This document shows, in pieces, positions 49,524 through 52,635 of a stretch of DNA of 64,000 nt. The notes under the pieces were generated by a model. The model made no database searches, had not been told where the DNA came from, and saw only the letters and a list, made by a program, of their open reading frames with translations. Positions within the stretch are counted from its first letter, which is position 1; every line of letters starts with the position of its first letter. This DNA comes from Mizuhopecten yessoensis (taxonomy: Eukaryota): assembly GCF_002113885.1 (NCBI RefSeq), contig NW_018408472.1, positions 1 through 64,000 on the forward strand, in the 5' to 3' direction. Made by a program: the position numbers and the translations under genes.

Positions 49524-52500
49524 GTTTAATCACGGACTTAAATAGCAATCGTATTTCGTGGAATAATAAAGAACGATCTAATCAAGTACAGAAAAAAACT
49601 GAATTATAAGTATGTATTGAGAATTTACTGGTGTGTGAAAACATTATATGGATATTTCTATGGTTCCTCTCCAAAGAACCATTCTGATACATATAATTGA
49701 ATAATGTGACTCAGACTCTTGAACGGTAATTATTATTTGTGAAAAGGGGTGAACAAATTAAAATGACTTGAAAACACTCAGAGACGTCGCATTCTAATCA
49801 ATAGCAACCTTTCATATTTATCTCCGAGATTTCAACAGTCTCTTCAGATGACTGGCCAAGTCCTTTTGTCTTACGGCCTCCTTCATCACAACAGAGACGT
49901 ATTATATGTCTCTGATCACAACGTGTGTAATGGACAAGTATGCTAGGATTGTCTCCCCTGCAATATAGGTTTGAAGCGGTTTGCTCTCATATACATTGTA
50001 CCACGGAATTAGATTGCTATCTCTAAGTCCGTGATTGTAAATAGTTGTCCATGGTGCATACAATCAATTAGGATGATGCTTGTCACATAAAATGATACCT
50101 GATTTTTTAAATACCATTTCGTTTTTAAAGTGTACCATGAACGAAAATAGAAATGAATATATTATTATTCTATATATGTTCCAAAAACAAATTGTCGCGG
50201 AAAACCGCATAAAACAATGGCCATTCCAATACCGAGATATGGACGTGTAAATTGTACGATTTTCACCTGTCATTCTTCTACTAATTAGCATAATCGTAAC
50301 TCGCGCTGAATTGGCCCCTATCGGCTGTGACCTCACAAGTTCGAGAACAGCCATGGTCAAACAGCGTCAGATTGCGAATTAATTTTTGTTTTAGTTTTGA
50401 GGAATCAGATTATGCTGAAGATAACATTATGTAGATGGTATCCAGTCATATAAAATTTTACAGAATTTCCAGACAGTGAGTTTAATTGAAACCAAACTGA
50501 CGACTGGTGGCATTGCATGTCCTGAACTTGAGCACTGATGAGATTTGTTTGTTCAAATGAATGAATTTGATGGCAATTAAACAGAAATAGTCTCAATGTT
50601 GTCGATCAAAGATATTTCTTAATTTTTACCTGGAAAGTCAGTTTGGAATCATTTTCTTTCCTCTACACAGAGACGTAAAAGTGTATGCACTTTATATATC
50701 ATTGAACAGCACTACTTCGTGACCAGTTTCTGTGCCGGAAAACTTATATTGCAAAGTTATATACTGCGGTACCTCTACAGTCCAAAAATATATCGTTGAA
50801 AGATGTGTGTTTCCAAAATAACTTCAACGTTGGTGTCTGCTGTTTTAATTGTCACTATTTTTAGTATCACATTTTAATGTCAAATCGACGACATGGTGTC
50901 TTCCTTATGTTAGGTTTACAATACAAATAAACAGCAAAATATCGACAGTTACACATTTAAGTGTATACAATACAGTACCTCTGTATGCGATGCTAAATCA
51001 GATAACGAACTTGTATAATCTAATTCAGTGATTACTTTTATCTCAAAAATATAATTGAATTATGAGATTCAAACATTTTTGTTTCTCCCTATATACATCA
51101 GAGACGTATATACTTTAATATGGCTTTTTTATGTCTCTGCTATACATCAGAGACGTATAATAATTATACGTCTCTGTATACATGTAGCATACACAAGTTA
51201 TAATCTAACATCTTGGTTAAATAAGGAAAATCAACTTGGTCCACTCCCTAAGCATACTTAGGTGTGCAATGTGTGTACAGGTAAATAGCACTAAACACAT
51301 GTGTCCAGTGCTGACAGCAGGAGGCCCAATACACACCTATATATATGTGTACAGGTATGACATCAAAGGGTTGTCAGCAGGTGGGCAAGGGGGTACCTGA
51401 AGTTAGCATGTAGATTGCAATTGGTGCAGATTATGTGTCTTCCAATTTTCAATTTAACAACAATGTCCTCAGGTGAGATAACGGGGAAATGTATAAGCAG
51501 AGACGTATATATTACGTCTTGGTATAAGGATCAATTTCAAGAAAAATATAAATAAATAAAATACGTAAGTACTGTCACAGAGTCACATAATATGCAAACC
51601 ACAATCAGTACAACTGCATCACTCGATAGATGAAAGTCAAAACGAGGCAAATAATGCTGGACCATGCTAAGCACATCATATATCTGATAAAGTGGTTTAT
51701 TGATAAAGTACTAATCTTTGTGAGACTTGAACGGACAGGTTCTCCCTCTGCAATATTCTTAGAAGTGGTGTGTATATCTTTTATGTGCTAAATTCCTTGG
51801 ATTGCATAAAGAATAAAAACGTTCCAAGTTTTATGACTGGGAGTAAAAAAACACGGGTTGCTGCTCAATTTGAGTATAAATTATTGTACCGGTGCATTTT
51901 TTGTTTGTTTATCTACATATTGTAAAGAAAGGGGTGCGGTACGCCTACGTTAATTTGATTCAATTTTTAATCAATTGTTTTGTGTTGTAAATAGGTAGGT
52001 GTTCATCAAATTTTCTAAAGATCAATTTAATAATAAAAAGTATATTATTTACAGTCACTAGATAAACAAATTGTGTAAAAAACACATTTCAATTTAGATA
52101 GCATCCAACACACCGTTTGCTTCCTCAGGAGGAACTCATTTCATAATTAAAATTGTAAAAAAATCATTTATATGTATGTAGTCTTTAAATATTACCTACA
52201 CAAGTAAGTGACGACGGAATATATCATATAAGTAGCTAAAAAGCTCACATATCGAACGCACGATCGAAGCTTCTCGTTATATTCCTATAGGGCTGCATGT
52301 TGAACTTGTGATGTCACAGATGTGGCTACCCCCATGGAGGTGATCGCAGCTGAGCCAAAGGTGTGGTTTTCAGATAAATCACAATATCACGGAAACGGAG
52401 TCAACTACGACGTTCGCACTTTCTTAGCCTTTTATTATATTAAGTATTTTCATAGCTTGATATAGCAAAACGTTCAGGGTACACTTTAATCCCCAGCACG

Positions 52501-52635
52501 GAATAAGGTATTACCAGGGTTGAAGTCCTGGGATCAATACCCTTAAAAGTATGTCCCCTTGTAGGGAGGCTCTAGCTGTTACAACACACAATCAGAGACA
52601 TATAAAGCCAGTAGTATATACGTCTCTGGTACAAT
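49524..52635. mobile_element. Cluster of seven 23-41 bp palindromic inserts with 7-bp TSDs (P-superfamily-type transposon footprints)
   Basis: Inserts at 49531-49560, 49892-49914, 50002-50033, 51099-51139, 51148-51176, 51498-51521 and 52593-52628. All start CAGAG or CACGG, end in the inverted copy, and are flanked by 7-bp direct repeats (5/7 to 7/7 identical). Confidence 0.75.

Follow-up and report, generated by a model that had tools for sequence, protein, structure and literature searches.

A 64,000-nucleotide stretch of the genome of the bivalve Mizuhopecten yessoensis (contig NW_018408472.1, positions 1 to 64,000; this whole 64-kb stretch is referred to here as the window) carries nine micro-palindromes of 21-41 bp that begin with CA, end with TG and are flanked by 7-bp repeats, and eight of the nine lie within 49.5-52.7 kb. 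Analysis of the window and of the genome (988 Mb scanned, in 82,659 contigs) indicates, with a probability of roughly 0.78, that the micro-palindromes are donor-site repair scars of cut-and-paste transposons of the P superfamily. A preliminary description of the same DNA had proposed that the inserts are excision footprints made from P-type ends and that at least two families contributed to them. Both proposals were supported: the inserts consist of the joined outer 9-19 nt of both element ends, and there are three related families with the termini CAGAGAC, CACGGA and CAGGGAC (families 1, 2 and 3, respectively).

Micro-palindromes of this kind occur throughout the genome in numbers far above those of the controls. 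The 12-mer CAGAGACGTATA has 4786 genome matches compared to 105 for its reversed control. Strict-ended micro-palindromes, counted up to 48-50 bp, were found at 1193 loci for the CAGAGACGT type (18-48 bp), 1830 loci for the CACGGA type and 522 loci for the CAGGGAC type, against 2, 0 and 9 loci in the corresponding reversed controls. Their length is sharply bounded: only 63 CAGAGACGT pairs span 49-79 bp, which is 19-fold fewer, and many of these are two adjacent or nested scars. Within the window, CAGAGACGTAT with at most one mismatch has 10 matches, 9 of them within 49892-52628, while the chance level is a mean of 0.61 and 10 matches were reached in none of 100 shuffles. A scan that used no motif, searching for N7-CA..TG-N7 with 8-nt inverted arms and at most one mismatch, returned perfect 7-bp repeats at 49885, 51141 and 60626 and a repeat with one mismatch at 49995. 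The same scan gave no exact match in 20 Markov shuffles of the window.

To characterise the flanks and ends, 49 family-1 loci (98 ends) were fetched from the genome. The flanking 7-mers form a perfect duplication in 32 scars, a duplication with one mismatch in 12 (44 of the 49 thus having no more than one) and with two mismatches in 2. The remaining three have no matching repeat, and two of them (L003 and L012; L-numbers denote fetched loci and C-numbers genome contigs) are composites in which the true boundary lies further out. For family 2, a 7-bp duplication was recognised in 11 of 13 scars and was perfect in nine. The 42 non-redundant empty sites that could be reconstructed share the palindromic consensus T(-3) nTnnnAn A(+3), with T at -3 in 81%, T as the second base of the 7-mer in 73%, A as the sixth in 73% and A at +3 in 81% of the sites. 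The scar sites are therefore true transposase integration sites.

The 98 ends were compared with five tip variants, each followed by the inner motif AGAGATTGG. Of these ends, 96 keep 9-19 nt, where 9 nt is the minimum that the search pattern allowed, and the other two keep 20 and 26 nt. The 16-nt tip is retained to at most 17 nt, the 17-nt tips to at most 18 nt and the 18-nt tips to at most 19 nt. Retention therefore stops a single base beyond the tip, irrespective of how long the tip is, and the inner motif is reached in only one of the 49 scars. The two ends are joined directly, overlap by 1-6 nt or are separated by 2-19 filler bases, and the microhomologies at family-1 junctions are TA, ATAC and TATA. 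By our own derivation, the commonest family-2 27-mer would be the product of tip overhangs that pair at TA and have their flaps trimmed. Judged by eye, the CACGGA and CAGGGAC scars listed look like those of the CAGAGAC family.

That the retained ends stop one base past the tip argues, indirectly and from sequence, for a long staggered cut followed by end-joining, as in the Drosophila P element, and fits a stagger of about 17 nt that would leave remnants of the terminal inverted repeats (TIRs) at the donor site. The transposase would cut the transferred strand at the element boundary and the other strand some 17-19 nt further in, a single base beyond the variable tip, so that both flanks would keep the duplication together with a tip overhang, and end-joining would seal them. 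Scars formed in this way would now be functionless, fixed neutral records of past hops. The Drosophila P transposase is known to cut with a 17-nt stagger, and non-homologous end joining or homologous recombination then repairs the break left at the donor site (PMC7776569; PMC10983969).

Long elements with the same termini, 7-bp duplications and a P-type transposase, which the preliminary description had expected to exist, were found on search. Elements of ~1.0-1.7 kb, scored in at least 40 copies, carry the same tip at the start of their 30-bp inverted ends and are flanked by 7-bp duplications (L009, L010). Two complete elements were identified, one of 8.5 kb (C5526:64720-73217; L047/L059) with ATACGAG on both sides and one of 8.2 kb (C1613; L055:554-8791) with AGTGAAT on both sides. 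The ends of both elements differ in their outer 17-18 nt, one tip being ...TAAAGCC and the other ...TATAACAC, after which both ends continue with AGAGATTGG, and these two tips are the exact tip pair of many scars. The outer tips are swapped between the two copies, the gene-proximal end carrying ...TAAAGCC in one and ...TATAACAC in the other. An open reading frame (ORF) of 765 residues in the C5526 copy (L047:3811-6108, minus strand) matches PF21787 (E = 8e-24), PF21788 (E = 1e-20) and PF21789 (E = 8e-7), that is, the TNP-like RNase H halves split by a GTP-binding (guanosine triphosphate-binding) insertion domain that are a feature of the P superfamily, and among PDB structures it matches only 6P5A (E = 1.6e-17), the P transposase of Drosophila. 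Genome-wide there are 25 matches to the P-type RNase H domain; a genome search with PF12017 gave no match but is uninformative, since its control likewise matched nowhere. The termini, read directly, are CAGAG, CACGG, CAGGG and, in a further element at L051, CACAG, all of the CANRG form of the superfamily. The target duplication, 7-8 bp in the superfamily, is exactly 7 bp in the two ~8.2-8.5 kb elements and in two 1-kb elements. In their domains, duplication and termini, and indirectly in their stagger, the elements have the P-superfamily features examined.

Other element ends were also seen. The P-like element at L051:1880-9860 (C76738), 8 kb long and distinct from those above, has perfect inverted ends of 30 bp starting CACAGGGTCACG and the duplication GATGGGG, and an end sequence similar to that of L051 adjoins L009 on the right. 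Near position 439 of L057 (C60011:1-510), an element end consists of a D-type tip minus its last 3 nt followed by a complete 17-nt C-type tip, and this doubled tip looks like a repair product at one cleaved end. The length of the appended tip, exactly 17 nt, is further indirect evidence for the long stagger. An A-type left end at L139 (C5342) lies 5 kb from P-like ORFs and has neither a matching right end nor a duplication. A tip beside a P-like fragment in L046 was considered as an element end and rejected, as it is a solo tip adjoining another repeat.

Several points weigh against the scars being products of P-type excision. The N-terminal (THAP) region of the transposase ORF falls in a run of N (L047:6109-6978; L055:1443-7676), and an autonomous partner for the CACGGA or CAGGGAC families was not identified. 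In no case were a full element and its scar found on one and the same duplication, either between copies or between individuals, so that we can only infer excision. The lower bound on the retained ends, as mentioned above, belongs to the search pattern. Finally, identical 20-27-mers recur at unrelated sites, which a mobile micro-element would produce likewise.

This last point leads to the alternative that the palindromes are micro-MITEs (miniature inverted-repeat transposable elements), in which the 20-45 bp tip-to-tip unit is itself cut and pasted and makes its own 7-bp duplication. Such mobility would account for the same 20-, 23-, 25- and 27-mers at several unrelated loci with different duplications, for scars stacked at one target (window 51092-51183; L007, L012) and for scars nested within one another. 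It is nevertheless improbable, as the junctions grade into one another, each tip being truncated to a variable extent and the filler varying as well, and TA, ATAC or TATA microhomology between tip overhangs would be expected to yield just the forms that recur. The conserved inner TIR segment is missing in 48 of the 49 scars, the limit at one base past the tip is left unexplained, and the shortest palindromes (20 bp) lack two complete tips and would be too short for the loop of a paired-end complex. A recurrent 60-mer was rejected as a mobile unit of this kind because all 8 copies have identical flanks and hence hitchhiked.

Interrupted homology-directed gap repair (synthesis-dependent strand annealing) off a sister element could instead have reduced whole elements to extreme internal deletions. 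Deletion derivatives of 1.0-1.7 kb do exist, and 26-36 nt of one TIR survive in a few longer forms (L002, L003; C3995, C4226, C5536). Random interruption would give no sharp limit, yet 96 of the 98 ends keep 19 nt or less and stop at the same landmark for 16-, 17- and 18-nt tips, and the counts fall 19-fold above 48 bp, so that this origin appears very improbable. That the elements are of the hAT type can hardly be credited: their CAGAG termini fit YARNG, and T as the second and A as the last-but-one base of the duplication (nTnnnAn) resemble the hAT target pattern nTnnnnAn, but CACGG does not fit YARNG, hAT excision proceeds via flank hairpins and leaves no TIR remnants whereas these scars consist of TIR tips, and the identity is refuted by a duplication of 7 bp, not 8, by the TNP-like P domains of the ORF and by its PDB match to P transposase only.

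Within the preferred reading of staggered P-type cleavage and end-joining, we also considered that the stagger might be coded by sequence and not by distance, a tentative idea that we think more likely wrong than right by some way. The same hexamer would be present twice per end, each copy would mark where one of the two strands is cut, and the intervening 16-18 nt would serve as a free spacer. In family 1, CAGAGA stands at the boundary and recurs as the inner CAGAGA of CAGAGATTGG; in family 3, the outer CAGGGA is accompanied by the inner GAGGGGATTGG. If true, such coding would account for the number of tip variants (five or more), for the tip swap between the ~8.2-8.5 kb copies and for retention that always ends a single base past the tip, irrespective of tip length. 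Separately, in L020 (C20:119102-120498) and in family-1 TIRs, the terminal hexamer and the beginning of the inner motif vary together, CAGAGA occurring with CAGAGATTGGCAAC and CAGGGA with GAGGGGATTGGCAAC, and the inner GATTGGCAAC is common to families 1 and 3.

Among known systems, the Galileo and 1360 (Hoppel) group shares 7-bp duplications and CANRG-type termini with the families described here. Galileo, compared by features and not by sequence, differs in its very long foldback TIRs, against ~30 bp here. Tc1/mariner footprints also place a scar built from transposon-end nucleotides between target duplicates, but Tc1/mariner elements make a short stagger and only 2-3 nt per end are retained, compared to 9-19 nt here. 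Drosophila P elements are alike in the split RNase H fold with a GTP-binding insertion domain (predicted here from domain matches), in TIRs of ~30 bp, in a palindromic target consensus and in a donor site that keeps both duplications and up to about 17-19 nt of each end. They are unlike in making 8-bp duplications (7 bp here) and in having termini unrelated in sequence, and the tips found here come in at least five variants that differ between the two ends. Moreover, the host here is a bivalve, the scars are fixed in thousands and are not laboratory revertants, and we infer the stagger from them. P has been reported to favour local reinsertion (PMC7776569). Zebrafish Pdre2/THAP9 is likewise a P-type system outside insects with many internally deleted copies, and Pdre2 excision activity has been shown experimentally (PMC10983969), whereas its TIRs are 13 bp and its duplications 8 bp. 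In the literature examined, the 17-nt stagger is documented for Drosophila only, the zebrafish paper citing the fly work (PMC10983969). Genome-wide tip-tip scars are not described in the P-element and Pdre2 literature examined (PMC7776569, PMC10983969), and a literature search returned no description of genome-wide P-type scars in molluscs, which is not proof of their absence.

No feature of the P-element transposase is odder than its 17-nt staggered cut, and the fixed scars, present in their thousands in a distant animal, would provide natural, sequence-level evidence for the long stagger as an old property of the superfamily. The scars are also a ready data set on end-joining outcomes in the mollusc germline. 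They hold ~2400 tips against 146 intact ends and so outnumber surviving ends about 16 to 1, they ride inside other transposons and may seed satellites, and repeat annotators miss them.

The scars of the window are listed in Table 1, together with the transposon copy that hosts four of them. All seven inserts of 23-41 bp named in the preliminary description are present where it placed them, although the repeats at 49531 and 52593 match at only 5 of 7 positions and an extra C at 51140 offsets the right repeat of the 41-bp insert by one base. Its list had missed an eighth, decayed insert at 50668. A ninth, at 60633-60653, falls beyond the range that it covered, and the 21-mer of this insert recurs genome-wide.

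Table 1. Positions of the excision scars and of the host repeat in the window.
Feature	Position	Strand	Flanking sequence and remarks
Decayed family-2 scar (CACGGA type), 30 bp	49531..49560	+	7-mers GTTTAAT / GAATAAT, 5/7 match
Family-1 scar, 23 bp	49892..49914	+	Perfect ATCACAA duplication (49885-49891, 49915-49921); single-copy flank
Family-2 scar, 32 bp, CACGGAATTAG tip and CACGGACTTAG tip	50002..50033	+	Duplication ATTGTAC / ATTGTAA
Host repeat, one copy of a ~2.36 kb TIR transposon	50129..52485	+	TTAA at 50125-50128 and 52486-52489
Decayed remnant of a 29-bp family-1 scar	50668..50699	+	CTCTACA site of the host repeat; inherited
Family-1 scar, 41 bp, E-type tip, filler, C-type tip	51099..51139	+	TATACAT site; inherited within a host-repeat subfamily
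Family-1 scar, 29 bp, two A-type tips	51148..51176	+	Perfect TATACAT (51141-51147, 51177-51183); private to this copy
Family-1 scar, 24 bp, B-type tip	51498..51521	+	GTATAAG site; inherited with the host repeat
Family-1 scar, 36 bp, C-type tip joined to D/B-type tip	52593..52628	+	7-mers ACACAAT / GTACAAT, 5/7 match
Family-3 scar (CAGGGAC type), 21 bp	60633..60653	+	Perfect GTTAGAA duplication

Read evidence from other runs, in the form of contigs assembled from four other sequencing runs, was compared with the window. Contigs of all four runs span 49400-50153 with at most one difference, the 49892 scar being unchanged and the 50002 scar present in all four, and two runs cover 51070-51322, including the 51148 scar, without any difference. 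These scars are therefore common to the sampled animals. Neither empty nor full alleles at the unique-flank scars were found in the contigs of the four runs, and joints that skip 51090-51176 were ruled out as alleles because they derive from high-depth paralogs. The unit at 52593 is multi-copy, with a depth of 5,589-43,551 in three runs and 1,563 in the fourth and with many different loose ends and flanks. The two family-2 scars at 49531 and 50002 both have the ATAGCAATC junction, an uncommon variant, and lie 470 bp apart in opposite orientation; the shared junction fits one element hopping locally.

The host repeat has 15-bp inverted ends of AGTGTACC(C/A)TGAACG and very high read depth, and 992 candidates were found on first look. 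Its paralogs are 70-90% identical, and the similarity ends at TTAA on both sides. It is non-autonomous, with about a thousand relatives, and piggyBac or Kolobok-like superfamilies are the candidates for its affiliation. In an alignment of 22 paralogs, the scar at the CTCTACA site (window 50668) is intact in nearly all, with CTCTACA on both sides, and the scar at the GTATAAG site (window 51498) is in the same place in essentially all. The 41-bp insert at 51099 is shared, with the same filler, by a subfamily (L060, L062, L063, L066 and L075), and twelve paralogs have an empty single TATACAT, so that the filled and empty pair reveals an exact 7-bp duplication. The empty single-7-mer sites foreseen in the preliminary description thus exist among paralogs of the host repeat, but not as alleles in the four other runs. 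Since paralogs have them too, the scars at 50668, 51099 and 51498 were inherited when the host transposon was copied. Its ancestor already bore at least two P-type scars, which spread as passengers. Another subfamily of the host repeat has a scar at a GGTGCGC site that is absent from the window copy. The 51148 scar, stacked on the TATACAT repeat of the older 51099 scar, is absent from all 20 paralogs compared; it duplicates the TATACAT that flanks the older scar and is therefore a new event in the window copy.

The four scars in unique flanks outside the host repeat, at 49531, 49892, 50002 and 52593, and that at 51148 inside it all formed at this locus. The original claim that the inserts record repeated insertion and excision here does not extend to the three scars copied in with the host transposon. 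Five independent events in 3.1 kb, compared to one in the remaining 61 kb of the window, make a strong local cluster. Across the genome, 8 cross-family pairs within 5 kb were counted among the first-listed loci of families 1 and 2, against 0.77 expected under uniform placement within contigs, and none of 5000 simulations reached 8. Regions that attract several P-like families therefore exist, although some cross-family pairs might be passengers of one repeat. The regional hotspot of the preliminary description survives in this weaker form only, and a dense scar cluster alone is no evidence of a local insertion hotspot or of a promoter.

The cluster had also been placed beside a putative distal CLIC promoter, for which no support was found: the CLIC motifs searched for are absent from all six frames. 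The only long ORF near the cluster, at 57945-59414, is of low complexity, stays open beyond 460 codons on either strand and has only spurious low-complexity Pfam matches. Rather than a gene, this is probably a repeat, either tandem or of low complexity, and the surrounding 58-60 kb region is GC-rich with a strong GC skew. The cluster lies in and around a transposon copy, and neither a promoter nor a CLIC gene could be placed there.

Scars of families 2 and 3 are also nested in family-1 scars elsewhere in the genome (C1125:221941-222006, C4184:489986-490061, C4552:67985-68063 and C4373:2081590-2081668). They carry their own 7-bp duplications (ATTATAC, ATATTAC, GTATTAC) at ATATTAC-like sequence within the tips, which themselves contain a favoured target. 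Two loci contain scars in tandem repeats. L016 (C143:180878-182055) is a 46-bp satellite of more than 20 units, each a 7-mer plus a 39-bp scar-like palindrome similar to the 52593 unit, and L015 (C13:414025-414346) is a 110-bp tandem repeat that includes a scar. The direct repeat built into each scar may seed such arrays.

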